This document shows, piece by piece, positions 11,798 through 30,169 of a stretch of 64,000 bases of DNA. Position 1 is the first letter of the stretch, and every line of letters starts with the position of its first letter. Both the position numbers and the translations under genes were made by a program. Origin of the DNA: Malacoraja senta (lineage: Eukaryota); assembly GCA_038087875.1 (NCBI GenBank), contig CM075977.1, positions 17,112,001-17,176,000 of the forward strand, in the 5' to 3' direction. The notes beneath the pieces were generated by a model. The model was not told where the DNA came from. It worked only from the letters and a program-made list of their open reading frames with translations, and ran no database searches.

Positions 11798-14319
11798 GTC
11801 TGAAATTTGAAGACTGTCTAACTGCTGGTGCCAGCCTGAAGTGTACCATCTGTGAGTACATGGCAGACAATGTGCTGAGCTTCCAACACCACGTACTCAC
11901 TCACCTCACGCCAGCAGCCTTCAAATGCAATCATTGCCACTTCGGTTTCCAAAGCCACAGGAAGCTTGTGCAACACCAAGAGCTTCATCACAGTCAAAGC
12001 AGGAAGCTGCAAAGGGAAGGTGAAAATGAACACTCTCCGTTCGACGGTGAGGACACTTTTCAATCAATAGCAGCAGATGCAGCAAGTAGACAAGAAGTAC
12101 TGCCGAGTCCAGGGGTCAGCCAGAATAAGGAAATGTGCTCTGATGCCGAGGGAGAAAAGATAGAGAAAAATGTGCAGTTGAGTGTTACACACCAGAAGAA
12201 TGAAAACCAGCCTGCAGGAAACAGGCAGAACTTTCCCTTTGCCAGAATCAAATCAGAGCCTTCAAGTCCACGACTTGCTTCCTCTCCAATTCAACCCAAC
12301 ATAGGATCCACTGTCCCAATGGGCCCCTTTCTCTCTCAGTTTGCTCTTTCCCAGGATATTGCAATGGTTCCCCAAGCTTCAGAAATTCTAGCCAAAATGT
12401 CTGAACTGGTACACCGTAGGTTAAGACAAGGTGGAAGCAACTATCCGCCTGTCATTTACAGTCCACTTATACCAAAAGGGGCTATTTGCTTTGAATGCAA
12501 CATCACTTTTAATAATTTGGAGAATTATTTGATTCACAAGAAACATTACTGCAGCACACGATGGCAGCATGTCGTCAAATCCCCAGACTTTGCCAACACT
12601 AATGAGAAGATGCCGGAGACAATAAGTCCCAGCAGCGGTCCAAGCCCCATTAGCCTCCAGAGTGCCCTTTGTAACCCACCAAATCCGGAAAATCCACTTC
12701 TTCAGTCAACCAGCATCAACTCCTCCATAGTCCTTGATGTAGCAGGACCGGATGGGAAAAGTTCAGACAAAGATCATTCCATGCAAATGAAGAAGGAACC
12801 ATCCACCAGCGGCAATGATGAACAACCAGATGGAAAATCAAAGGATGTGAAGAGTCCTAGCACTCCTGCATTGGATGCACCTAACGATCCAAATAAGACT
12901 ACATGTGAAGCCTGTAATATAACATTTAGCAGGCATGAAACGTTTGCCGTTCACAAGCAGTACTACTGCGCCACAAGGCATGATCCACCAATGAAGCGAA
13001 TGGCAGCAAATAAAGTACCAGCAATGCAAAGGACCATACGTAGTCGTAAACGACGGAAGATGTACGAGATGTCACTCCCAGAACAGGAGCAAAGATCACA
13101 GATGGTGCAACAAGCTTTTTTTAGTGTATCAGCCATGGGCAGCCCTGGAGCATCTTCTCAGGAATCAGTGGAGAATCTAGGTGAAAGCTCCCACAAGAGG
13201 TGTGAAGTGTTTCTTGGAAAGCAAATGGAGGTGTCCGCCCCAGGAGCTGGAAACCTTACTCCTGCCAAGTGTAACGTATCACAGTCAGTTGTTGCCAGTA
13301 TGGACCTAGATCTTCCTATGGATTTAAGCAAAAAATGTTTGCCTCAAACTGAGAAAACAAGCTGTTCTCCGAAGAGACTTTTGGACTATCATGAATGTAC
13401 TGTGTGCAAGATTAGTTTTAACAAAGTAGAGAGTTACCTTGCACACAAGCAAAAATTTTGCCGAGGTATGGGTGTCCCCCGTGCAGAAACAGCCCATTTA
13501 GAGCAATCGAAATTTCTCGAGCTGCAAAAAGAAAGTGCTTCAGTGAAATCTGAAACTGTCAGCCCCGAAGTGAGCAATGAGAAAACTACAGTGAAGTGTG
13601 AGAAAAATGAGAATTCAAAATTGCCCTCCCCAAATGATAATATATTCCCCCCGCAGTTAGGAACTCTCTATGGACTGAAATCTTTCAATGAGACAGGTCA
13701 GCTCACTTCTGTTAAGGAAGAAAACAAGAATGTGGTCTATCCACATTGCCTTTATCCTGGAGCAATAAAAAAAATGACCGGGACTGAGCAATTATCTCCA
13801 TATTATGGAATTAAGCCGACTGACTACATCTCAGGAGCTGTTTTCATACAAAGTGAAATAGACGAGCTGGTGCCAGCCACACGTGATAGAAGTGAGCCTT
13901 CTGAAGACCAGCCTGTTTCCAATGGATGTTCTTCTCAGAAGAAGGAAACTGTTCCACTCATGCCTAAGGGTCGGGGAATGATGGCAGTCAATGGAGCAAT
14001 AAAACAAGATGAAAAATCTTTCCCAAGCAACCCAAATCAGGATAACTTGTCCCAGAGTTCCCAGCACGCAGATGGCCACAAATCTCCCTCTTGGGTATCT
14101 GAGTGCCCTGTCATTTCAAATGAAAACCCATTGCCTACGGCTAAAGCTTTGTTAGAAGAGCAATTAGTTCACACTACAAAAAGCACCAGCGGTTCTGTTC
14201 ACCCCACAAATAGCGGGAAATACTGTCGTCTCTGTGACATTCAATTTAATAACTTGTCTAACTTTATAACCCACAAGAAATTCTACTGCTCATCACATGC
14301 TGCAGAACATGTCAAATGA
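11798..14319 (+). CDS. ZFPM2: ZFPM2/FOG2 terminal coding exon (zinc fingers 3-8, basic RKRRK motif, CtBP-binding PMDLS)
   Basis: Acceptor tgaacAG (11796-11797); frame GLKFEDCLTAGASLKCTICEYMAD continues into the 819-aa ORF. FOG-type CCHC fingers (CFECNITFNNLENYLIHKKHYC, CEACNITFSRHETFAVHKQYYC, CTVCKISFNKVESYLAHKQKFC, CRLCDIQFNNLSNFITHKKFYC), C-terminus HAAEHVK*. PMDLS at 13315-13329. Confidence 0.98.
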
Positions 14320-15345
14320 AAGTTGCTGCCATGCACTGCTCCTGTTTGTAGTATAGTGTTGGTCCTGCACAGTTTGTATAAAAATGTGAAAATAATTTTT
14401 AAAAAATGCTGCTTGATTTACATCAGAACAGTTACACCAGGACAATCAAGGGATGGCTGTGTAGTTCAATAGCTTGAGGCTAGTCTGTCATTTCATAATG
14501 CAGTTCATGTCTTGATATTAATGTGAAATGCCAGTACTATTTTTCACCAGAATTAATTTATTTTCCAAGCAGTATTCATAGCTGTAGTTAAATTTCAATT
14601 TTATTTAAAGTTTATACTGAAATTGTTTTTAACATTGTATAGTTATTCTTGTGCACTGTAGAGAGTCTGAGTCACATACATAGAGACAGCATTTGTAGGT
14701 AAACTGGTGAGGTAAAGCACTTGTGTATTCGAATATCCTTGTATTTGTTGCAATTTTCCTGTACGTGCCAGAATATAAGTTGCTTTATTTTCAGACTGCA
14801 AACATCAGAAGATGTGAAGGCCTTCAAAACTGCTAAAGAGGCGTACAACTTTCATTTCATATTTAATATAACATTTTCAGTCCTAAATTGCAGCTTAGAT
14901 ATCAGCTTATACAGTAATCAGTAGGCTTTGCTTAAGATGAAAAATATGTAGCAATTTGTTCCTATCCACTTTCTTAAACTGAGGTATGTATGTTTTATTG
15001 AAGTTGTTAACATTCTTGTATCTGTACTGTACTTTTCTTTGCTGACACTCTTGTCTCACTTTTGAAACATTTGCTGTAAAATGCAAAATTTAATATGAAC
15101 AACATTACTGGAAGCAGTATTGAACAGTGGTTGAAACCCTTCTGCTGTATTTTATTGAAAATATAATTAGTAGTTGCAGTTGCTGTTACAAAAGTCATTT
15201 TGGGACAATGAAATCTGAATAATAGAGTACCAATACTGCAACTGGTGATAAAACAAATATTGTTCTACTTCTGATAGAAATTATTTCTCAACAATGTTGT
15301 TACTATGCATGTATATGTATGGAATAAAAATTCCATAAAGCCAGA
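14320..15345 (+). promoter_or_regulatory. ZFPM2: ZFPM2 3' UTR with poly(A) signal AATAAA (15323-15328)
   Basis: AT-rich, repeat-free ~1 kb after the stop; AATAAA followed by a T/GT-rich tract (ttttgttgtg ~15361). Cleavage site approximate. Confidence 0.7.
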
Positions 15346-15824
15346 GAACATAGATTGCATTTTTGTTGTGCTTGAGGTGACATTTTTAATCAGCATGTGA
15401 AACTATCTCAGGATTAATTTGCAAGGGCTGAGATTGGAAATTTTCATTCCAAAATCCAGAGACTTTTCTTTCAAATGTGTATAAAATTTGATGCATATTT
15501 CCCTGATGATAGGATATAATTATTTTGTTGTGTTAAAGTGAAAGTTGTAGATTCTGTACAGTGAATCATCGTTACAACGAACCATAGGGGAGTGAATGGT
15601 GTTCGTTATTGCCGATTGTACGCTATAACCAAGTACGGTATTATTGTATGTAGTTGAAACAAAGAACTACAGGAGTAGTTCAAAAAGAACACAAAGTGCT
15701 GGAGTAACTCAGTGGGTCAAGCAGCATCTCTGAAGAACACTGATAGGTGACATTGTGACCTTTCTTCAGACTGATTCAGTCTGCTGAGCTACTCCAGCAC
15801 TTTGTGTCATCTCTATTATACTAA

Positions 15825-16676
15825 AAGCCCTGTCTCACGGTGCGAGTTGACCCACGAGGTACCCCGAGCGTAAGACTCGTGGTTGTGCACGAGATTCCAA
15901 GTGTATGATCAAGAGTTTAACCGAGTTCCCACGGGTATGACTCAAGATTGCCGTTAACTGTCATTTCTGCGATGTTCCAAGTTCGTCTCCCGAGTTAACA
16001 AGTTCCTTTCCCGAGTTACTCTTGAGCCAACCTTCAATGAAGGTCTGTTTTAATAAGCAACATCTCCATCCTGCGGCTTTGAGTTAAAGATAGAATTCAG
16101 CGCGGCCGCATTTATTGATGTGACCTACAAAGGGAAAATGTGCACCGTCCAATGCCAGAGCAGTTATACTGATGATTTGTGTGAAACACACATCACGTAG
16201 TTAGAAGACCAGCAGGCGGAGGTTTGCTATATTTTAATTGAATTTACTGCCAGCTCTACACACTGCGGGGAGACTGGAGATGAAATCTTTGAAAGTGCAG
16301 GGATGCACACATCAGATTGTTGGGAGACGGAGCTCAGTGTTCGCCTCCTGAGCTGCTTTGGTGCCCAGGTGTGAGTTGAGGTGGAGGGAGGTTGGGGGGG
16401 GGGGGGGTCAGGTTAAACTCACCCATTTGACAGAGGCAGAGGATTACGAGGATCCAGCAAAACTCGGACTGCATGGAGAGCCGAGACTGCCCCGCTGGTG
16501 GCCAACTTCCCCCTGTTGGCCACCAGCCGGCAGGAGCTGTGCATGGAGCCCGCCACCGGATTCGTGTCTGACTGCCTGGGCAGCCTGAGGGAGGCAGATG
16601 CACCCTGCCCGGGGAGAGGCCGCGGAGAGACTGCGGGGAGAGTACCTCACTCTGACTGTGATAGGGAGAGACAGAG

Positions 16677-16723
<47 letters not shown>

Positions 16724-17874
16724 GTGGAGTTCCTCTGACTGTCTGACTGTGTGGGTGTGGGGGGTGGGACAGAGAGCGAGAGAGACACACACACACACAG
16801 GCAGCGTGGAGTACCTTTAACTGTGTGTGTGGGAGAGAGAGACAGAGGCAGACACACACACACAATGGGCAGTGTGTACCTCAGTCTCTGTGTGTGTGTG
16901 TGTAGGGGAGAGAGAGATACAGAGACAGTGTGGACCCCTGACTGTATGAAGGAGAGAGGGGGAGAGAGACAGAGAGAGAGAGGCACAGAGGCAGTGTGGT
17001 GTACTTCGGCGTGACTGTGGGGCAGAGAGAAAGAGCGCACAGGACCTCGGTCTATCTGTGTGTGTGGGAGGGAAGAGAGACTAAGCAGAATACATCGGTC
17101 TTATTGTGTGTGGGGGGAGAAAGAGAGAGGTGGTGGGGAGAAAGAGAGAGGTGGGGGGAAAGAGAGAAATGGGGGGAGACGTATATACACACAAAGCAGA
17201 GTTTTACTGTGTATGTGGGAGACACAGATGGACTTACCTCGGTCTTACTGTGTGTGGGAGAGGGGGAGAAAGAGACGTACACTCACAGAGGCAGAGTCTC
17301 TCAGCCTGTGTGAGAGGGAGGGAGGGAGAGAGACACACACACAAGGTGGATGTGAAATCTCACCTGCCTGTTTCAGTGACCCGCACCCGCTGCTAGTGAA
17401 TGAAGACACCCTCATCTGTCTCCCCCTCCTCTCCCTCCACTCTCCACCCTCTCTCCTCCACCCCCCCTCCCTCCCTCCTCCAACCCCCCACTCCCCCCCA
17501 ATTTGGAAATGTCATCCCATCACCTATTCCTTCTCTCCAGAGATGCTGCCTGCCCGCTGAGTTAAAGAGTTCCCACGGTAGACTCACGAGTCACTAAGGT
17601 AAACGCACGGGCCACTGCGTTCTTACAACGTGTTTAAATGTTTCAAATGTTAACCTCAAGAGTACATTTTACTCGTGGAAAAGTTTAAACATGTTTGAAT
17701 TTTTCCAAGAGTTAACAAGTGTCACGGGTACCTGCCGTTAGCGCCAAGAGTCGCTAAGTTGCGTCCACGAGTTCCAACGTTCCCGCTATGCTAATCGTAC
17801 GTGATTACCATGAGTTAAATTGGTTTTAAGCTCGGGGTACCTCGTGGGTCAGCTCGCACCGTGAGACAGGGGTT
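15825..17874. mobile_element. Non-autonomous TIR element E1 (PIF/Harbinger-like)
   Basis: 45-bp TIR aagccctgtctcacggtgcgagttgacccacgaggtaccccgagc (2 mismatches), TAA on both sides; internal (CA)n/(GA)n-rich tandem region 16650-17350. Confidence 0.85.
16434..16645 (+). pseudogene. Candidate captured exon of an unidentified host gene inside E1
   Basis: Branch-like ctcac plus ttgacAG acceptor; GC3-rich codons reading RQRITRIQQNSDCMESRDCP/LVANFPLLATSRQELCMEPATGFVSDCLGSLRE with one +1 shift. Protein not recognised. Confidence 0.35.
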
Positions 17875-18299
17875 TAAAGGGCCTGTCCCACTGTACGAGG
17901 TAATTCAAGAGTTTTCCCCTGATTCGAACTCGGAGAATGTCCGTAGCGGGTCCGTAGGTGTTTGTGGACAGTGATGGAAATGGGTTTTAGGAACTAGGGG
18001 TACTCTATGGTCCGTGAGGTTGAGGTTGGGAAGGAAGGGGGGGGGGGGGGGTTATGTGCGGTCATACCCATGTAAGAGTACAAGAATGCATCACTTGTTT
18101 ATTGTGTATTTATAATATAGTTTATTGTGTATTATATGTCNNNNNNNNNNNNNNNNNNNNNNNNNNNNNNNNNNNNNNNNNNNNNNNNNNNNNNNNNNNN
18201 NNNNNNNNNNNNNNNNNNNNNNNNNNNNNNNNNNNNNNNNNNNNNNNNNNNNNNNNNNNNNNNNNNNNNNNNNNNNNNTGCTTCGGTGAGGGAAGCAGG

Positions 18300-18500
18300 T
18301 CGATGATTGATCAAACGGCCCCTAGGAGACTGTGCCTGATTGGCCGCCAAGTCACCAGCACATTATGTGATTGGACACAATGCCCTTGGAGACAGCAGCT
18401 GATTGGACGGGAGGAGACCGATTTGTTGATTGGATGGGATTTTAAGGGAAGCTGGTCGGTGATTGGACGCAACCCCCTTAGAGACAGCAGTTGATTGCCC
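18300..18500. promoter_or_regulatory. Array of inverted CCAAT boxes (GATTGG) at ~32-bp spacing
   Basis: ATTGG at 18339, 18370, 18402, 18429, 18462; degenerate copies at 18306 and 18494. Confidence 0.55.
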
Positions 18501-18639
18501 GCCAAATAATCAGGCACAAAAAATTGAAAATAGGAAAACAATCAAATCAGAATTACAATTTAAATCGGAAGAATATCATGCCTGATCTGCAGCAAGGATA
18601 CTAGTATCCGCTCTAGTATCTTTGATCTACAATTCCTTC

Positions 18640-19040
18640 CTATTGAAGATAACCCTGGCCCGAAACAACTCCTAATCTATTCTCCCTCCACAGATGCCGC
18701 CCAGCCCGCTGAGTTCCTCCAGCACTCTGTGTTTTTTATTTAACTCTTGAAATTGAAGTTAGACATAAAGCTGGAGTAACTCAGCGGGACAGGCAGCGAC
18801 TCTGGAGAGAAGACTTTTCTTCAGACTGAACTGAACTCTCGTCAGTGAGAGTACTTGTGATTGTCTGCAAAAGGGTCTCGACCTGAAACGCCACCCACTC
18901 CCTAGAGCCGCCGCCCGTCCCGCTGAGCCACCCCAGTCCCCCTGTGTCCACCTTCAACTCCAGAGCCAAACAAAAAACACAGAGTGCTGGAGGAACTCAG
19001 CGGGCCAGGCGGCACCCGCAGAGGGAACCGACCAGTAGCC
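18640..19040. repeat. Cluster of degenerate Penelope-derived short repeats
   Basis: Several gctggagtaactcagcgggacaggcagc / gctgagttcctccagcac arms in both orientations. Confidence 0.75.
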
Positions 19041-19188
19041 GCCACGGGCCAGGGTTCCCCCCACCCCCCTTCCCTCAACAGGAAGGAACCGCAGATGCAG
19101 CCGTCCCCGCAAAACAGCAAATGATTCTGGGAATGCCGAGGCGAGAGGGTGAGAAAGGGGGAGTGAGAGAGCAAGAGAGATCCAAAGG

Positions 19189-19392
19189 ACGGGTTCGGAT
19201 CCCAACTACGCCTCGCTGAGACAGCGCCAGAAGTTTCAAACCTACGGCCCCCTCCTGTTCGAGCCACGTGGACCAAGATATCACGTTGTAAACAACCACG
19301 TTCACTACTTTGACTGGGAGTTCACGTTCCGCCACAGTCCCGCCAGCGGTTTACAGCTGTTTGATACCGCTTCAGGAAGGAGCGGGTGGTCT
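19189..19392 (+). pseudogene. Copper amine oxidase (AOC1/AOC2/AOC3 family) fragment, part 1
   Basis: TGSDPNYASLRQRQKFQTYGPLLFEPRGPRYHVVNNHVHYFDWEFTFRHSPASGLQLFD/(1-nt deletion)RFRKERVV resembles the AOC segment P.GPRF.V.G..V....W.F.F.....SG..I.DVRF.GER.VY. Confidence 0.85.
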
Positions 19393-19957
19393 GGCTTGCG
19401 ATGCGAATAGGGCTGTTGAGCCAAAACCAAAAAGGCCAAAGTCAGGCAATGCCATTGTAGTGGGAGATTCCATTGTCAGAGGTACGGACAGGGGTTTCTA
19501 CGGCAACAGACGGAATTCGAGGATGGTGTGCTGCCTTCCTGGTGCCAGGATCCAGGTTGTCACGGACAGAGTGCAGAAAATCCTCAAGGGCGAAGGTGAA
19601 CAGCCGGAAGTGGTAGTGCATGTCGGCACAAACGATGTCGGAAAGAAGGGGATGAATATTCTGCAGCGTGACTTTAGAGAGCTCGGAAAAATGCTGAAAA
19701 GCAGGACCTCCAGAGTTGTTATCTCCGGTTTGCTTCCAGTTCCTCGTGCTGGTGAGAGCAGGAACAGGGAGATACGGGACCTGAATGTGTGGCTGAGGAA
19801 CTGGTGCATGGGGCAGGGATTTAGATTCTTAGATCACTGGGATCTGTTTTGGAGTAAGGGGGAACCGTACAAAAGAGACGGATTGCATCTTAACAGGTTG
19901 GGGACCAGCATTCTGGCAGGCAGGTTTGCCACTGCTACACGGGTGGTTTTAAACTGA
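19393..19957 (+). CDS. CR1 ORF1 C-terminal SGNH/GDSL esterase domain (5'-truncated)
   Basis: AIVVGDSIVRG...VVVHVGTNDV...DGLHLNRLG; open frame to the stop at 19957. Confidence 0.85.
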
Positions 19958-20026
19958 ATAAGGGGGGTGGGGGTGTAGAATGGGATAGTTGAGGATGGAG
20001 TTAAAGGGAAAGGGTTTCTTAAATGT

Positions 20027-22990
20027 GTGAGCGTAGAGACAGAGGGTGGTAAAATGAGGGTAGAAGCAATAGGTAGCAAGGTGAAAAGTAAAAGTGGCAG
20101 GCAGACAAATCCAGGGCAAAAATCAAAATGGGCCACTTTTAAACATAATTGTATAAGGGGTAAGAGTGTTGTAAAAACAAGCCTGAAGGCTTTGTGTCTC
20201 AATGCAAGGAGCATTCGTAATAAGGTGGATGAGTTGAATGTGCTGATAGCTATTAATGACTATGATATAGTTGGGATCACGGAGACATGGCTCCAGGGTA
20301 ACCAAGGCTGGGAGCTGAACATCCAGGGATATTCAATATTCAGGAGGGATAGACAGAAAGGGAAAGGAGGTGGGGTAGCGTTGCTGGTTAGAGAGCAGAT
20401 TAACGCAATAGAAAGGAAGGACATTAGCTTGGAGGATGTGGAATCGATATGGGTAGAGATGCGAAACACTAAGGGGCAGAAAACGCTAATGGGAATTGTG
20501 TACAGGCCACCTAACAGTAGTAGTGGAGTTGGGGATGGCATCAAACAGGAAATTAGAAATGCATGCAACAAAGGTAAAACAGTTATAATGGGTGACTTCA
20601 ATCTACATATAGATTGGGTGAATCAAATTGGCAAGGGTGCTGAGGAAGAGGATTTCTTGGAATGTATGCGGGATAGTTTTCTAAACCAACATGTAGAGGA
20701 ACCAACGAGAGAGATGCTATTCTAGATTGGGTATTGAGTAATGAGGAAGGGTTAGTTAGCAGTCTTGTTGTGCGTGGCCCCTTGGGCAAGAGTGACCATA
20801 ATATGGTTGAGTTCTTCATTAGGATGGAGAGTGACATTGTTAATTCAGAAACAAGGGTCCTGAACTTAAAGAAAGGTAACTTTGAGGGTATGAGAAGTGA
20901 ATTGGCTAAGATAGACTGGCAATTGATTCTTAATGGGTTGACGGTAGATATGCAATGGAAGGCATTTAAAGACTGCATGGATGAACTACAACAATTGTTC
21001 ATCCCAGTTTGGCAAAAAAATAAATCAGGGAAGGTAGTGCATCCATGGATAACAAGGGAAATCAGGGATAGTATCAAAACAAAAGATGAAGCGTACAACT
21101 TAGCCAGAAAAAGCAGCCTACCAGAAGACTGGGAGAAATTCAGAGTCCAGCAGAGGAGGACAAAGGGCTTAATTAGGAAAGGGAAAATAGATTATGAAAG
21201 AAAACTGGCAGGGAACATAAAAACTGACTGCAAAAGCTTTTATAGATATGTGAAGAGAAAAAGATTAGTTAAAACAAATGTAGGTCCCTTGCCGTCAGAA
21301 ACAGGTGAATTGATCATGGGGAACAAAGACATGGCAGACCAATTGAATAACTACTTTGGTTCTGTCTTCACTAAGGAAGACATAAATAACCTGCCGGAAA
21401 TAGCAGGGGACTGGGGGTCAAATGAGATGGAGGAACTGAGTGAAATCCAGGTTAGCCGGGAAGTGGTGTTAGGTAAATTGAATGGATTAAAGGCCGATAA
21501 ATCCCCACGGCCAGTTAGGCTGCATCCCAGAGTACTTAAGGAAGTAGCCCCAGAAATAGTGGACGCATTAGTGATAATGTTTCAAAACTCTTTAGATTCT
21601 GGAGTAGTTCCTGAGGATTGGAGGGTAGCTAATGTAACCCCACTTTTTAAAAAGGGAGGGGGAGAGAAAACGGGGAATTACAGACCAGTTAGTCTAACGT
21701 CGGTAGTGGGGAAACTGCTAGAATCAGTTATTAAAGATGGGATAGCAGCACATTTGGAAAGTGGTGAAATCATTGGACAAAGTCAGCATGGATTTATGAA
21801 AGGTAAATCATGTCTGACGAATCTTATAGAATCTTTCGAGGATGAAACTAGTAGCGTGGATAAAGGAGAACCAGTGGATGTGTTATATCTGGACTTTCAG
21901 CAGGCTTTCAAGAAGGTCCCACATAAGAGATTAGTATACAAACTTAAAGCACACGGTATTGGGGGTTCAGTATTGATGTGGATAGAGAACTGGCTGGCAG
22001 ACAGGAAGCAAAGAGTAGGAGTGAACGGGTCCTTTTCACAATGGCAGGCAGTGACTAGTGGGGTACCGCAAGGCTCAGTGCTGGGACCCCAGCTATTTAC
22101 GATATATATTAATGATTTGGACGAGGGAATTGAATGCAACATCTCCAAGTTTGCGGATGACACGAAGCTGGGGGGGAAGTATTAGCTGTGAGGAGGATGC
22201 TCGGAGGCTGCAAGGTGACTTGGATAGGCTGGGTGAGTGGGCAAATGCATGGCAGATGCAATATAATGTGGATAAATGTGAGTTAATCCACTTTGGTGGC
22301 AAAAACAGGAAAGTAGACTATTATCTGAATGGTGGCCGATTAGGAAAAGGGGAGATGCAACGAGACCTGGGTGTCATGGTACACCAGTCATTAAAAGTAG
22401 GCATGCAGGTGCAACAGGCAGTGAAGAAGGCGAATGGTATGTTAGCTTTCATAGCAAAAGGATTTAAGTATAGGAGCAGGGAGGTTCTACTGCAGTTGTA
22501 CAGGGTCTTGGTGACACCACACCTGGAGTATTGCGTACAGTTTTGGTCTCCTAATCTGAGGAAAGACATTCTTGCCATAGAGGGAGTACAGAGAAGGTTC
22601 ACCAGACTGATTCCTGGGATGTCAGGACTTTCATATGAAGAAAGACTGGGTAGACTCGGTTTGTACTCGCTAGAATTTCAAAGATTGAGGGGGGATCTTA
22701 TAGAAACGTACAAAATTCTTAAGGGGTTGGACAGGCTAGATGCAGGAAGATTGTTCCCGATGTTGGAGAAGTCCAGAACAAAGGGTCACAGTTTAAGGAT
22801 AAGGGGGAAATCTTTTAGGACCGAGATGAGGAAAACATATTTCACACAGAGAGTGGTGAATCTCTGGAATTCTCTGCCACAGAAGGCAGTTGAGGCCAGT
22901 TCATTGGCTATATTTAAGAAGGAGTTAGATGTGGCCCTTGTGGCTAAAAGGATCAGGGGGTATGGAGAGAAGGCAGGTACGGGATACTGA
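20027..22990 (+). pseudogene. CR1 ORF2 (endonuclease and reverse transcriptase), at least two frameshifts
   Basis: Consecutive ORFs 20027-20725, 20734-22185 and 22058-22990 together give APE-RT-C-terminal domain. Confidence 0.92.
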
Positions 22991-23092
22991 GTTGGATGAT
23001 CAGCCATGATCATATTGAATGGCGGTGCAGGCTCGAAGGGCCGAATGGCCTACTCCTGCACCTATTTTCTATGTTTCTGTGTTTCTATGTCT

Positions 23093-23301
23093 ACGAGTTG
23101 CGCGTCCAGGAGGTGAACTCCGTTTACGGCGGAGAGACGCCAGGTCTGATGAGGGCCAAGTTCTTAGACAGTCATTATGGAATTGGGAAAAGTTCCAATG
23201 GGCTGGTAAAAGACGTGGACTGCCCCTACAGCGCCACTTTCCTCCACATTCTCCATCTCATGGAGACTGGAAACCAAAGATCCTATAGCAGAGCAAGATA
23301 G
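23093..23301 (+). pseudogene. Copper amine oxidase fragment, part 2
   Basis: YELRVQEVNSVYGGETPGLMRAKFLDSHYGIGKSSNGLVKDVDCPYSATFL matches the AOC motif YE.S.QE....YGG..P..M...Y.D...G.G.....L..G.DCP..AT; joins part 1 in frame (VV-YE) when the CR1 is removed. Confidence 0.88.
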
Positions 23302-23585
23302 TCCACTCGACGAAAAACCCGTAGTTGGGTCATGGGTAATCTGCAGCACCATTTCCGTAACCGGCTTCCGTCTCCGCTCTAGTATCTTTGCTTTGGTCAT
23401 GGCTTCTTCATGCACAAATCATCTTTTTTTTCTCAGCTGCAGGTGATCATTTTGATATTCCTGCCTAGTCCTCCTTTTTAACTTTGAACATACAAAATAT
23501 TGCCATTTGGAAGGAGCTCCAGCAAATCCTGCACCTACTCAAGCCATCCTCACCCCCCACCCCCCCCCCCCCCCCCACCCTACCC

Positions 23586-24699
23586 CAGGGCCGGCCTTAG
23601 GAGTTGCGGGGCCCAATTGGGAACAATTTTGGTGAGCCCCAGGTTCCCAGCCAAGGTCTGTAGAATCATAGAAATACAAATAAAGTCTATTATAGACTTT
23701 ATACCTCTATGGTAGAATGGAAAGTAATCAAAACGTGCGCTTAAAAAATGCCTGCGAGTTAATGGACCAAACAGATCTAAGCTCCATTTTAATATAAAAT
23801 TGCATACATGTAAGCCTACAAGTAACAAACAAAATGTGTAGATCACCTCTGAAAAGTACATAGTTACAATACCACTTGTTTTAGTGACTGTGAAATGAAA
23901 AAAAAAGAATTCACTAGATCCTGGAAAACCAATAACCATTGGCGAAAAACCAGTCCAGGCATTACATTTTGGGCTTCAGCCCCAACCTACCCTTTGGGCT
24001 TCTACCCCATCCTAACTTAGTTGTGTGTGTGTGTGTGTGTGTGTGTTAGTTGTCTGTGCGTTATGTGTGTGTGTGTGGGAGGGAAGGAGAGAATGGAGGG
24101 AGGGAGAGAAGGGAAGAAGGAGAGAAGGGAGTGAGGGAAGNNNNNNNNNNNNNNNNNNNNNNNNNNNNNNNNNNNNNNNNNNNNNNNNNNNNNNNNNNNN
24201 NNNNNNNNNNNNNNNNNNNNNNNNNNNNNNNNNNNNNNNNNNNNNNNNNNNNNNNNNNNNNNNNNNNNNNNNNNNNGAGAAGGGAAGGGGAGGGCAGGCG
24301 GCAGGAGAGGATGCCGGGGTCTGGGCGGACTGGTGTGAGGTGAGGCCGAGGTTTGTAAACGTTGCTCCAACCCCCGGCCCGGCCCTCCCTGTATTGTTCA
24401 CCACGTCTTTCCGGGGAGAGAGAGGGGGTGGAGCCGGGGCTGTGTGCGTGAAGCAGGGCGACTGGAGGGGCGGGAACGCTGCCCCGGGACCATGAGGGAA
24501 TGACCCACCTGCCCCTTCTCCATTCCCCCTCACACCCCCTCCCCTTCTACCCCTTTCTTCCCCCACCCCTCTACTCTCTCTCCACCCATCTCACCCCCGG
24601 CCCTCCACCCGGGGTAGATCTACCTGAGCCGAGAGTAGATTACTCTGGCGCGGGGCCCAATTGGGAGCAATTGGTCCAATCGGCTTAAGGCTGGCCCTG
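23586..24699. mobile_element. Second non-autonomous hAT-like element nested in the outer hAT
   Basis: TIR cagggccggcctta / taaggctggccctg; subterminal gcggggcccaattggga at both ends; no clean TSD (C-rich flanks); contains an N-gap. Confidence 0.7.
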
Positions 24700-24803
24700 C
24701 TCCCCACCCCCCTTCTCTCCGACATGGACACGGAACGATCGCCCCCCTTTTTTTGTTAAACATCTATTTTCTTCGGGTGTTTTTTTTTTAAATTTCCCCC
24801 TTA

Positions 24804-25236
<433 letters not shown>

Positions 25237-26091
25237 ATTAAGTAGCGCAGGATAAAGCTGCGAATTCATGCACAGGATGGAAACTGGAAACTGAAAACTA
25301 GGGGAACGCTGTCCCCCTGCGTACCCCCCCCCCCCCCATTTCCATCACTGTTCGTGGATGTCTCGTAGCGGCTCGTACGAGTCAATAGTAACAATTTTTT
25401 TCATCATGAGTATTTTTTTACTCGTGGACATTTTTCACAGTGTTGGAAAAAGCGTCACGAGTTTACCAGATTTCCCGTACGAGCCGCTACGAGACATCCA
25501 CGAGCTCCTACGGACCAGCTACGGACATTCTCCGAGTTCGAATCAGGGGAAAACCCGGGAGAACTCTTGAATTACCTCGTACAGTGGGACAGGCCCTTTA
25601 AACTCTTCCCTTTGTTCTCAACATTCCAAATGTCTTTGTGAGCCAGGGTTGTGTTGGCTTTCTTTTAATCTCCTTCATTTGTATCTTCTTCCAAATGCGT
25701 GGCCACAGCCTTCCCATTTTCACACATGCTACTCACATTTTGTCCCCCGACCGGATAAATATGTTCCCGTCGCATTCAACTTATATTTCTCAAGTTATTA
25801 ACCTTTTAAAAACAGCTTCAAAATATTAAAGTTTTCAACGTTCTAATTTTGAAGAAAAAAATGCCGACTGACGTCACAATAAATTCACACGCTCCGGGCG
25901 CGAGGGCACTCCAGCATTCCAACCCGCTCGGCCTGGCTGGGATCCCTCGCCCTCTCCATCTCTACCCTCCCTCCCTCCCCCCGACTCTACCGTCTTTACT
26001 CTAACCGCCCCCCCTCCTCTCTACTCCATCTCCCTCTCTACCCCCTCCCCATCCAGCACTCCAACCCACTCGGCCCTGCTGGGACCCGTTC

Positions 26092-26456
26092 GGCCGCACA
26101 CACAAGGAGTGCTCCAAGCACTGGATTCGGGACGAGGAGGCCCATCGTGGAGAGTTACACCCCAGCCCTTTGAGAAGGACCGATTCTTCAGGCCCGACTT
26201 CACCTCCCTCGATGTGCTCACCTTCGCTGGCAGCGGCATCCCAGCTGGCATCAATATCTCCAACGACGACGACATCCGTCACATGGTGGGGTTTAAAAAC
26301 GTCTCGCTCTGTAATGGCCTACTACACCTAGAAGGAGAAACTCACCTTCCTGGAGGATCACGACAAGGACGTGTACATCAAGTGGAAAGGCCCCTCCTTC
26401 CAGGTCGGCCTTCACAAGCTGCAGGGTCACGGCAGCGGGAAGCTCTTCGTCTAGGA
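26092..26456 (+). pseudogene. DPP3: Dipeptidyl peptidase 3 fragment, disabled, inside the Helitron
   Basis: [18 protein letters not shown], then [47 protein letters not shown], then [44 protein letters not shown]; the HELLGH metal motif is degraded to HKLQGH (26413-26430). Confidence 0.93.
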
Positions 26457-26530
26457 CAGGGATCTCCAAACTATGGCCCGCGGGCCACATCCAGCCAGGC
26501 ACATGATTTTATCTGGCCCGCACCAAGCTC
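26457..26530 (+). mobile_element. hAT-Charlie-like left terminus (right end not found)
   Basis: cagggatctccaaactatggcccgcgggccacatccagcc, preceded by gtctagga (Charlie-like target site). Confidence 0.6.
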
Positions 26531-26735
26531 AGTGCAGAACGAAGCATGTGTCTGTTAGGCGTCGAGTCGATGCGAGTCAGGTAGCTGCTCTTAGTGTTTG
26601 TTACGGGGTAGGTCCCTCGAATTGTCGGAGCCGAGACATCACAGGGCCGCCGTGAAGAAGGGTGCAATGATAGGGGGGGGGGTTCGGCAGCGGTGGTCAG
26701 AATGGGTCGGCGGCGAGTTATAAAGTGAAATCGTT

Positions 26736-27445
26736 CCTCTCTGCCTCTCTCTTTCCTCTCTGCCTATCTCTCTCCTGTCTGCCTATCTCCTCTCTGCCTC
26801 TCTCTCTCCTCTCTGCCTCTCACCTCCCTGCCTCTCTCTCCTCTGCCTTTCCCTCTCCTCTCTGCCTCTCTCTTTACTCTCTGCCTATCCTCTCTGCCTC
26901 TGCCAGTCTCTGTCTCTGCCTCTCTCTTTCTCTGCCTCTCTCTCTCTCTGCCTCTCCTTTCTCTCCCTCTCTATCTGCCTCTCTCTCCTCTCTGCATCTC
27001 TCTCCTCTGCCTCTCTCCCTCTGCCTCTCTCTGCCTCTCTATCTGTCCCTCTCTCTGCCTCTATCTCTCTCTCTGCACTCTCTCTGCCCTCTCTCTGTCT
27101 GCCTCTCTCTCTCTGCCCCTCTCTCTCTGCCTCTCACTCTCAGCCCCCCTCCCTCTCTACCCCCCACTCCCTCTCTACCCCCACTCCCTCTCTACCACCA
27201 CTCCCTCTCTAACCCCCTCCCTCTCTAGCGAGTGATGAGTAATGGGACCTATGGGTGAGTGGTGGAGTATTGCGTTTGGGGACCAACCCTGCCATGTGAC
27301 GCCGTTCGCCTCCCCTATCCCTCACTCTCTACCCGCCCTCTCTCCCTCTCTACCCCCTACTCCCTACCTTTACCCTCCCTCTCTACCCCCCTCACCCTCT
27401 CCCTCTCTACCCCCTCCCTCTCTACCCCCCTCCCTCTCCCTCTCT
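26736..27445. repeat. CT-rich low-complexity / tandem repeat (ctctctgc, ctctaccccc units)
   Basis: Directly visible pyrimidine-rich repeats. Confidence 0.9.
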
Positions 27446-28928
27446 AGCTGCGCCTGCGAAGTTGGGGGCTATGCGTGAGTGGATAGGGCGGGGGATGGGG
27501 GAAAAGGAGCGAATTAATAATATTAATATAATATCAAGGGAGGGGGGTTAGTGTGTGTGTGTGTGTGTGATGCCGAATTCCGCCCCCCCCCCCAACCGTG
27601 CGTTGGTGTGATGGGACCCAACGGGTCCCACTTGGTCTAGTATCAACTTAAAACTAATTGGTGATGCTGCTGGTCTGCACCAGCGAGCCCTTCTTCACTG
27701 TTGACTTAGCTGTTGTTGCTGCTCACCTTGTGGCCCCGACAGGACGCACTTTCTTCAGGTTGCGGCTACCGACAGGATGCACCCGGTCACCGTGCGGCTC
27801 CCTCCCTTCTCACCCATTGCTTTGTCCATTCCACCGCCTCCTCCTCCTCCCCCCGCAGTCATCGATACTGTCCATGGTGGAGTATGTCGACGACTCCAGG
27901 GAAGAAGTAGGAGATAGCGGCAGTGGAAGGGGGAGGAGAGGCTGAGTGAACAAAGTGACAGGTCAACAGGAAGAAGCAGCAGCAGGTGGGAGGGGAGGGA
28001 GCTCCAGGGTGACTGAGCTTGTCCTGTCAGTGGTAGTGGCTGAAGAAATCGATGTCCCCATGGGGCTGCAACGTCAAACGGACGGTTCGGTGGGTGAAGA
28101 AGGGCTCACTGGTGTACCTTGCAACTTCCCGAGGCGGTGTCGGGAACCAGGGCCGGGATGACATCGGTAGGTCGATTCACTTTAACCAAACTACGTTATA
28201 AAGGGATTCGTTAAAATGAGAATTTATTGTACTGCCACTATCATTGTCTTTTGGCATCAGTGAACCACTGATTGTTGGTTGTTTCCCTTTTCCAACATTT
28301 TTGGTCAAAGTAATTGCAACAAAATTGATGTACTATTGGTACAAAAAGTAGGGAAGTAAAAAAAGAAGAATAAATGATGTTACTTTATACAGCATCTATA
28401 TTAAGTGTTGCTTCAGGGATTTCTCCTATCCCATCCAAATAAATAATGGGAAAGATTTCTTTCCCTTCTTTCAGGGCTTTTACAATCCTGAAAAAGCCCT
28501 TAAGAATTTCACAAAATGGAGAAAATCAGAAGTATTTGGATGTTGATGTTGCTGATCAGGTTGTATGGGGGATATAACATAAATATAAATTAATCCACAC
28601 CCTTTTGACCTAGTGTGGGGCTCACACAAAATTTGCTGCATTGTTTCCTGACACAGTGCACACCTGATGGCCAGTTTCGATTCAACACATGCACCACAGA
28701 TGGCCGACATTTTATCTTCTGTTAAACACAAGCGAAAATGTTTCCAATGTAAGCTCAGGCATCTGCACACACTGCTGCAGCAGTGGCACAGCTCATAATG
28801 CTTATTCAAGGCACTTCAAAGATGCCACACTGCACCAGCAATCTGTCCCCCAATAGGTCACTAGGATTGTTGAGGCACTACCCAGGGAAACAATCAGTGG
28901 CCCTGTGGAGAACTAATCTCTGTGCCTC

Positions 28929-29158
28929 AGATAGACACAAAATGGTGGAGTAACTCAGCGGGACAGGCAGCATCTCTGGATAGAAGGAATGGGTAACGTT
29001 TCGGGTCAAGACCCATCTGAAGTTCTTGAGTCTGAAGAAGGGTCTCGACCCGAAATGTCACCCATTCCTTCGATCCAGAGATGCTGCCTGTCCCGCTGAG
29101 TTATGCGCCATTTTGTGTCTGTCTTTGGTGTAATCTAGCTACTGCATTTCCTTCCTAC
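28929..29158. mobile_element. Palindromic Penelope-derived short retroelement with 12-bp TSD
   Basis: Inverted arms agacacaaaatg...tttcgggtcaagaccc / gggtctcgacccgaaa...cattttgtgtct; tctctgtgcctc duplicated at 28917-28928 and 29159-29170. Confidence 0.85.
29032..29059 (+). ncRNA. Minimal hammerhead ribozyme core (Penelope-type)
   Basis: CTGAAGA-a-GGGT-ctcg-ACCC-GAAA-t-GTC. Confidence 0.6.
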
Positions 29159-30169
29159 TCTCTGTGCCTCTCAGGATGGCATCATTCAAGATCCCACAGC
29201 ATCATCTCTACCAGTACCTTTAACTTTGCCTAGCAGCCAGGCAGACTTCAGACGTTTGAGGCAAGAAAGGGGAGTCCAAAGTTGAAATTTCCAGACTAGA
29301 ATCTTCTCAAGGGTATGCTACTGCATCACTTGCTGTCTCTTGGGGAAGCAGAACTGCAGGTAAAGGCTCATGATTAATTGGCACTGAAGGGACGAACATG
29401 GATGATTAATTGATTTTTCCAACATTTTTGTTGGTTGGATGTTAGAAGTAGTTTGGAATAGCAATTTGGTACAGTGCAGATGATAAGAAGATCGGCAGAA
29501 GAGGTAAGGAAAGATGGGATGAAATGAAAAATATTCCTTTATTTTTATTCACACCAGCTTATAACGTCTCTGGCAAGGCCAGATGTAATAATTATCAAAT
29601 AATGATTATTCCTAAACACCAAGGCAAGGTGGTAGGGAACCATAGTTTATTGCTCATTGTGAAGATATTTCCAGGGTGCTAGTAAGTAGGAAATTCCAAC
29701 ATTTTCCAAACCTACCAGAAGGAAAGACAAGGACGGTGAAAGCATGGGAACACTACCACCTAGAAGTTAACCTCCAAACCATGGACCATCCGAACATGGA
29801 AATATATCACACTTCCTTCATTGTCACTGGGTCAAAATGCTGCAACACCTTCCCGAACAGAATCATGGTATACCCACACTTCAAGGACTGCAGCGGTTCA
29901 AGAAACCAGCTCACCACCACTAAAAGGCAAATTGGCACAGGCATAGCCCACATCCCTTCCATGCATGTAAAATAAATAGCCAAAAACCCAAAGATAGTTG
30001 AGAAAGTGATTTTTAAGGAGGGTATACAGTGTATAATATCTAGACAGGTTAAGTGAATAGGTAACCAGTTGGGAGATGGAACATATCAGAAATCAGAATG
30101 AAAAGGCAGAATATTATTAAATAGCTTGAGAGTGTTGAGTGTGCGTGCTGGGAGAGGTCGAAGTAGTCC

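Follow-up and report, generated by a model that had tools for sequence, protein, structure and literature searches.

Positions 17969–25350 of the window (the whole stretch of DNA analyzed, 64,000 nucleotides) are taken up by an element with exact inverted ends, and inside it lie two pieces of copper amine oxidase homology separated by a LINE. The features of the locus and of the surrounding host repeat are given below, with the strand where one applies.

17872–17968, resuming at 25359–25385: left arm of a host palindrome, itself a repeat (blastn; inverted pairs I2 and I4)
17961–17968: left target-site duplication of 8 bases, TTTGTGGA, 7/8 identical to the right copy
17969–25350, plus strand: putative non-autonomous hAT-type element, 7,382 bases long with its nested insertions, having exact 16-base inverted ends and an 8-base duplication
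17969–17984, plus strand: left terminal inverted repeat (TIR), CAGTGATGGAAATGGG, starting with CAGTG and resembling the Ac/Ds end
18651–19056: nested palindromic short repeat (self-complementary blastn match, inverted pair I1), very abundant in all four sequencing runs
19057–19188, plus strand: purine-rich filler adjoining the amine oxidase cargo, which it also borders directly in other copies; no Pfam match
19189–19392, plus strand: piece A, the first half of the amine oxidase fragment, covering the D3–D4 linker and the beginning of the catalytic domain; one base is deleted after 19366
19393–23092, plus strand: CR1-type LINE, 5'-truncated, 3,700 bases (Pfam PF13472, PF03372, PF14529 and PF00078)
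23093–23298, plus strand: piece B, the second half of the fragment, reading YELRVQE... up to a TAG at 23299–23301, with secure homology to about 23265
23272–23442: start of a more abundant repeat abutting the cargo (one contig matches this span and continues leftward into dissimilar DNA)
24959–25236: second nested palindromic short repeat (self-complementary match; inverted pairs I5 and I6)
25335–25350, minus strand: right TIR, the exact complement of the left (16/16)
25351–25358: right target-site duplication, TTCGTGGA, directly outside the right end
25476–25603: partner of that left arm in the host palindrome (blastn; inverted pairs I2 and I4)

The two amine oxidase pieces were searched separately, and both matched the Pfam family Cu_amine_oxid (PF01179). 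Piece A (19180–19368, plus strand) matched positions 3–39 of 407 (E = 1.1e-5) with 25 bits, slightly short of the family cut-off of 27 bits, and piece B (23092–23298) matched positions 49–114 of 407 (E = 1.1e-10, 41.4 bits). Among solved structures, piece A aligned with chain positions 276–317 of human diamine oxidase (3hi7; E = 9e-6) and piece B with positions 328–395 of the same protein (E = 6.7e-11) and 344–401 of bovine amine oxidase (1tu5; E = 2.6e-11). The pieces are collinear, spanning positions 3–114 of 407 in PF01179 and 276–395 in 3hi7, and RFRKERVV, read in a frame shifted by one base, fills the ten-residue gap that separates them. When rejoined, the halves read as 59 codons, an X at the shift and 77 codons (137 in total, with one frameshift) followed by the TAG at 23299–23301; translated locally as a stop check, this joined reading holds no internal stops. 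The initial annotation had located both halves at these positions, rejoined them in frame with one 1-nt deletion and placed them at the start of the catalytic domain, upstream of the TPQ motif, and all three claims agree with our results, the matches extending from the linker through the first quarter of that domain. It had also extended the fragment to 23301; the TAG is indeed found there, but the AOC homology probably ends at about 23265–23272, as the alignment is weak over the final ~10 residues and the abundant repeat begins at ~23272. A continuation of the AOC reading in another frame (23273–23330, AEQDSPL...) lacked Pfam support and was rejected.

No precursor motif for TPQ (NY[D/E]) was found in the rejoined reading, the homology of which ends at PF01179 position 114 of 407. 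For the copper-binding histidines, the rest of D4 and the N2/N3 domains, we searched Pfam with plus-strand stop-free stretches of at least 45 codons from the flanks (17015–19216 and 23210–26555) and obtained no further amine oxidase match. Neither the TPQ tyrosine motif nor the copper ligands nor the N-terminal domains are present, and the fragment is therefore a dead passenger with no plausible enzymatic function, in agreement with the earlier view that it is not an active enzyme. It resembles the vertebrate AOC1 (diamine oxidase) and AOC3 (VAP-1) proteins in being collinear with the start of their catalytic domain, but represents only ~18% of such a protein, has none of the TPQ motif, copper-binding histidines or N-terminal domains, and is both frameshifted and interrupted. 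Piece B shows ~41% identity to AOC1 and AOC3 alike (our own count on the structure alignments) and its scores for the two are equal; piece A slightly favors AOC1. Short relatives of piece B were sought by word search among proteins of 38–120 residues, the only ones eligible, and no candidate emerged. Scans of metagenome contigs with a degenerate pattern for piece B and with an exact 24-base sequence from the left end of the element were blank, as expected for vertebrate DNA.

The insert between the two halves contains a GDSL esterase ORF1, an APE endonuclease and a reverse transcriptase (RT), with ORF2 broken across at least three frames, and ends in TTTCTATG/TTTCTGTG/TTTCTATG repeats (TTTCTRTG) without poly-A. 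Esterase ORF1 is reported only from the CR1 and L2 lineages, and not from chondrichthyan L2 (PMC13343379). The combination of esterase-type ORF1, APE and RT in ORF2, short 3' repeats, 5' truncation and lack of poly-A matches the vertebrate CR1-group LINEs (PMC13343379) and makes the CR1 label a reasonable one, although the ORF2 here is broken and the likeness comes from domains and the 3' end rather than from RT phylogeny. The LINE is bordered by gtct on both sides (19389–19392 and 23089–23092), and contig coverage increases toward its 3' end. The 3.7-kb insert and its flanking gtct lie where the initial annotation had them; the gtct may reflect microhomology with the 3' repeat of the LINE instead of a true target duplication. 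One contig from another organism joins 19391 directly to 23095, and the cargo is there unsplit and the LINE absent. Since the LINE splits the fragment here and the fragment is whole in that organism, the LINE inserted after the cargo was captured, the order that had been proposed.

The 16-base ends are exact inverted copies and are flanked by 8-base direct duplications, which bears out the earlier placement of the fragment between hAT TIRs. The octamer of the duplication occurs only once (CTCGTGGA) in the partner arm of the host palindrome, which is uninterrupted, and when the element and one duplicate are removed, the host arm can be aligned with its partner right through the insertion point; the partner arm thus resembles an empty site and confirms the insertion. 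The window contains 721 complex 16-mer inverted pairs at most 10 kb apart, and such flanks were seen only at this pair and at three repeat artefacts. Eight-base target duplications are also made by P-superfamily elements, so it is the appearance of the ends on which the assignment to hAT depends. No domain of a hAT transposase (BED finger, DDE/RNase-H fold or hAT dimerization domain) was detected on either strand of the element, which is therefore at most a non-autonomous member of the superfamily. Apart from the cargo and the LINE, the element gave no Pfam domains, and a self-blast found no second copy of its backbone or cargo within the 64-kb window. Two runs of N (18141–18278 and 24141–24276) lie within the element, and the bases there are unread. 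The window adjoins a ZFPM2-like exon, not an AOC locus.

The remainder of the interior consists of filler and repeats. One contig match stops exactly at 19191, and the filler may for this reason belong to another repeat family. Pieces related to the 18651–19056 repeat are found elsewhere in the window. At the gathering score, no Rfam family was found in 15000–29500, and the nested palindromic repeats are therefore not called hammerhead-bearing. The repeat at 23272–23442 is probably transposon backbone. A 21-base direct repeat containing CTAG occurs at 18604–18624 and 23370–23390 (score 37 vs. 25 for the best shuffle), its first copy being preceded by a 14-base palindrome.

The cargo is multicopy. 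In four sequencing runs, representing four organisms and studies, it was found on tens of distinct contigs per run, ~10–14% unlike the window copy; the contigs are ~200 bases long, and their counts include alleles and assembly variants and are not copy numbers. Filler and cargo are bridged by contigs in three runs (19076–19291, 19132–19322 and 19166–19366). The T missing behind 19366 is present in 7, 3, 2 and 9 contigs of the four runs, giving gat aTc cgc (D I R), and the family-level reading frame seems open across the ~137 codons. As the majority contig letter gives the human AOC1 residue at three differing positions, 19324 (Thr→Ala), 23201 (Gly→Glu) and 23249 (Ile→Thr), the window copy is decaying away from an AOC-like ancestor. 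By our own codon reading, 7 of the 10 listed private in-frame changes of the window copy alter the residue (6 of 9 within the homologous part).

Taken together, these observations are probably explained by a single decayed copy of a non-autonomous hAT-type transposon that carries ~380 bases from the large coding exon of a vertebrate gene for a copper amine oxidase of the AOC1/AOC3 family and was later split by a LINE. Under this explanation, a hAT element would have gained the gene piece together with ~130 bases of filler through a repair or template-switch event, and hAT transposase acting in trans would then have amplified the cargo-bearing element into many copies in this and related genomes. 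One copy would have moved by cut and paste into one arm of a short palindromic repeat, with an 8-base target duplication, and a 5'-truncated CR1-type LINE would subsequently have retrotransposed into the cargo between ...GTGGTCT and ACGAG..., probably primed by microhomology with its TTTCTRTG tail. The window copy has additionally lost one base after 19366 and accumulated point changes. The linkage of the cargo to the ends is seen in this one copy, and we infer that the other cargo copies bear the same hAT ends.

The gene piece could alternatively have arrived as the cargo of another mobile unit, Helitron-like or otherwise small (~18625–23390 or 19057–23271), that inserted into an outer shell of hAT. 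The CTAG-containing repeat on both sides of the cargo region, the palindrome before its first copy, loosely like a Helitron 3' end, and the contig boundaries at ~19191 and ~23272 would fit such a unit. However, contigs cross both CTAG motifs, which are thus not element ends in other copies, the interval 19057–23300 is bounded by neither an inverted repeat nor a short target duplication, and a gapped alignment of the flanks beyond the 21-base core is no better than shuffles. We consider a separate mobile unit unlikely; its Helitron-type form was rejected, as contigs traverse both motifs and the similarity stops at the core.

Two further explanations are less probable still. In mammalian AOC genes, the region of the fragment is internal to one large exon, and the relic of a resident pseudogene, one that decayed where it stood and later received transposon insertions, with the inverted ends unrelated to it, could look like the present locus. 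Such a relic is hard to reconcile with the absence of N2/N3 or more catalytic-domain homology from the plus-strand flanks, the multicopy state of the fragment in four organisms, the behavior of the surrounding 7.4 kb as a single insertion with a target duplication, and a neighboring exon that is ZFPM2-like rather than part of an AOC locus; we regard it as highly improbable. Retention of the captured piece by selection, whether exonized, regulatory or as a source of small RNAs against the parental gene, could be argued from the seemingly open family-level frame and from the transcription of some animal Pack-TIRs (Tan et al., PMC8277862), but an open frame is expected soon after capture anyway, the window copy holds a frameshift and a LINE, most of its listed private in-frame changes alter the residue, and the catalytic residues are absent. 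Selective retention thus seems equally improbable.

In plants, cut-and-paste transposons commonly capture gene fragments. Animal Pack-hAT elements have been described as well, an example being Pack-hAT-N8_XT of Xenopus tropicalis (Tan et al. 2021, PMC8277862), and in the survey of animal Pack-TIRs, hAT was the commonest carrier (208 of 370) and the median cargo was 224 bases (PMC8277862). The present element is similar in being a non-autonomous hAT with short inverted ends, 8-base duplications and a host-gene segment of a few hundred bases, its ~380-base cargo lying near that median. Judged by the gene-derived segment between TIRs with a target duplication, the Pack-hAT appears to be real and of a known kind. 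The Pack-hAT capture proposed in the initial annotation thus stands in that the gene piece lies inside such an element and that the cargo is multicopy together with its non-AOC flank, which supports the Pack part indirectly.

Unlike the animal Pack-TIRs (PMC8277862), the cargo here is internal coding sequence and not UTR, and each of the runs from four organisms has tens of contigs bearing it. Capture in the animal survey was mostly single-copy and transposition-independent; among 100 genomes only 4 cases were multicopy, the example cited having three copies (PMC8277862); its text does not mention cartilaginous fish (the word 'shark' is absent). The copy number of the cargo appears unusually high for an animal Pack-TIR. 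We suggest, tentatively and with some doubt, that the amine-oxidase-carrying hAT may be a high-copy family with tens of copies per genome, common to several related cartilaginous fishes, which, if true, would far exceed the two-to-three-copy multicopy Pack-TIRs of the 100-animal-genome survey (PMC8277862). A coding fragment amplified by hAT to many copies in cartilaginous fish would exemplify the transposition-dependent route in a vertebrate, and would make it possible to compare capture junctions among many copies. For annotation, caution is warranted, as AOC-carrying hAT copies would yield spurious amine-oxidase-like matches.

The element also shares features with the Ds-like elements of maize (PMC3260210): an Ac-like end, quoted there as C/TAGGGATGAAA and here CAGTGATGGAAA, an 8-base duplication, an unrelated filler interior that is occasionally gene-captured, nested later insertions and a target in repetitive DNA. 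In comparison with maize Ac, the 16-base end has one substitution and one extra G and comes from another kingdom, the likeness being one of superfamily-type features.

On the + strand, 19189-19368 translates to ...DPNYASLRQRQKFQTYGPLLFEPRGPRYHVVNNHVHYFDWEFTFRHSPASGLQLFD, RFRKERVV is encoded by 19368-19392 after a one-base shift, and 23092-23298 translates to YELRVQEVNSVYGGETPGLMRAKFLDSHYGIGK...SYSRAR, followed by TAG. We searched the two halves separately and used a local translation of the joined reading to check for stops. The first half, piece A, matched Pfam Cu_amine_oxid (PF01179) at profile positions 3-39 (E 1.1e-5; 25 bits, slightly below the curated score of 27 bits), and the second half, piece B, at positions 49-114 of 407 (E 1.1e-10, 41.4 bits). 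Among solved structures, piece A aligned to human diamine oxidase 3hi7 at chain positions 276-317 (E 9e-6), and piece B to positions 328-395 of the same chain (E 6.7e-11) and to bovine amine oxidase 1tu5 at positions 344-401 (E 2.6e-11). The pieces are collinear, RFRKERVV spans the short gap between them, and the rejoined reading of 59 codons, one broken codon and 77 codons has no internal stop, which together confirm the initial annotation's claim that two halves of a copper amine oxidase (AOC) fragment rejoin in frame. The NY[D/E] motif is absent from the rejoined reading. The last ~10 residues of piece B align weakly and the contig record places the start of a different repeat at ~23272; secure AOC homology probably ends near 23265-23272.

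The fragment lies within an element whose terminal sequence, CAGTGATGGAAATGGG, is found exactly at 17969-17984 (+) and 25335-25350 (-), with TTTGTGGA and TTCGTGGA directly outside. It is inserted in a palindromic short repeat, in the left of its two arms.

Features of the element and its insertion site (repeats located by inverted pairs and blastn)
17872-17968, continuing at 25359-25385: host palindrome, left arm
18651-19056: palindromic short repeat
19057-19188: purine-rich filler
24959-25236: palindromic short repeat
25476-25603: host palindrome, right arm

When the sequence is read without the element and one octamer, the left arm and the reverse-complemented right arm align across the insertion point, and the octamer is present once in the right arm. 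The right arm thus serves as an internal "empty site", making the 8-base duplication secure. Among the 721 non-simple 16-mer inverted pairs less than 10 kb apart in the window, flanks agreeing at 7/8 or more were seen only in this pair and in three repeat artefacts. Beyond those of the cargo and LINE, neither strand of the element yielded a transposase or any other domain, and the element is therefore non-autonomous; its putative assignment to hAT comes from the form of the ends and not from a transposase, 8-base duplications being made by P-superfamily elements as well. Ac/Ds elements, which likewise make 8-base duplications, have a similar end, C/TAGGGATGAAA (PMC3260210). The host palindrome targeted by the insertion (17872-17968 with 25359-25603) has arms of ~120 bases, and a further inverted pair, 15824-15876 / 17823-17875, points to an additional nested layer.

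Other copies were sought by aligning Logan contigs to 18290-24140 at 80% likeness, in four runs, each from a different coded organism and study. The share of sampled words present was no more than a third in any run, and no run therefore stands out as the source individual. In all four, tens of distinct contigs overlap the AOC part (51, 43, 44 and 47 at 19193), counts that include alleles and assembly variants; contig positions and counts were used, depth not being equal to copy number. The listed AOC pieces are ~10-14% diverged from the window copy, gaps counted. Contigs spanning both non-AOC filler and cargo (19076-19291, 19132-19322 and 19166-19366) show that the cargo is embedded in the same context elsewhere. 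One X15 contig joins 19391 to 23095 with CAT between, where the rejoined window would have TAC, and is thus a copy without the LINE and of unchanged length.

A T inserted after 19366 was found in 7, 3, 2 and 9 contigs of the four runs, and in three runs it accounts for most of the summed depth; it is the exact base that restores gat aTc cgc, or D-I-R. The majority letters in contigs change Thr to Ala at 19324, Gly to Glu at 23201 and Ile to Thr at 23249, in each case giving the human AOC1 residue of the structure alignments. Of the private differences listed in the reading frame, 7/10 alter the residue, or 6/9 inside the homologous part, 19193 lying just upstream of it. These residue-changing differences and the AOC1 residues of the majority indicate that the window copy is in neutral decay from an ancestor that resembled an amine oxidase.

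The insert separating the halves (19393-23092) encodes a GDSL-type esterase (PF13472, E 6.4e-13), an AP-type endonuclease (PF03372 and PF14529) and a reverse transcriptase (PF00078, E 7.1e-28), its second reading frame being broken across at least three frames. Its 3' end is TTTCTATG-TTTCTGTG-TTTCTATG-TCT, without poly-A. According to a 2026 survey, the esterase type is the sole ORF1 type in CR1 and L2 lineages, and chondrichthyan L2 elements lack ORF1 (PMC13343379); given the esterase, CR1, as initially annotated, appears the likelier label. Either a 4-base duplication or microhomology to the tail of the LINE could account for the gtct bordering the insert on both sides.

AOC exons continuing beyond the hAT ends had been named in the initial annotation as evidence against a capture. 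The + strand stop-free stretches of at least 45 codons across 17015-19216 and 23210-26555 gave no match to the amine oxidase domains N2 and N3 or to more of the catalytic domain, and the capture reading stands. Upstream, an 819-codon open frame at 11860-14316 (+) ends in ZFPM2-like CCHC zinc fingers (PF25445, E 1.3e-37) and is probably the large exon of a ZFPM2/FOG2-like gene, which places the transposon stack just downstream of it. Downstream, and separated from the hAT element by a few hundred bases, a stop-free stretch at 25872-26555 (+) strongly matches Peptidase_M49 (DPP3; only profile positions 211-263 of 548, E 1.4e-23) and is a second host-gene fragment. With these neighbours, the locus is not an AOC locus.

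The element belongs to a known kind, the hAT element carrying a gene fragment, here from AOC1 or AOC3, two paralogues that the data do not separate. Across 100 animal genomes, Tan et al. reported 370 Pack-TIRs, of which 208 were hAT and only four were multicopy, one example having three copies (PMC8277862); in maize, Ds-like elements are known to carry filler derived from genes (PMC3260210). Only the apparent copy number and the presence in several organisms are unusual here.

Within the element, the self-complementary repeats at 18651-19056 and 24959-25236 gave no Rfam match at gathering score; they are akin to pieces at ~28930, 35090, 39790, 46960, 47840, 57300 and 62550 and extremely abundant in all four read sets. 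The element contains two N runs. GCGGGGCCCAATTGGGA(A/G)CAATT occurs twice, 1,044 bases apart (23590-23640 and 24640-24700), adjoining GGCCGGCCTTAGG / CTTAAGGCTGGCC, and these GCGGGGCCCAATTGGGA repeats probably bound a further nested element of ~23590-24700 around an N run. A significant 21-base direct repeat lies on either side of the cargo region (18604-18624 / 23370-23390); its copies contain CCGCTCTAG, agree at 20/21 bases and scored 37 against 25 for the best shuffle, and in gapped alignment the likeness of their flanks stops at the core. Before the first copy comes a perfect 14-base palindrome, GGATACTAGTATCC. The direct repeat might have been left by template switching during capture. 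In the left part of the element, TGATTGG(A/C)C recurs six or seven times at intervals within 200 bases (18300-18500), and these copies may be subterminal transposase-binding repeats; this region is found on more contigs than the cargo.
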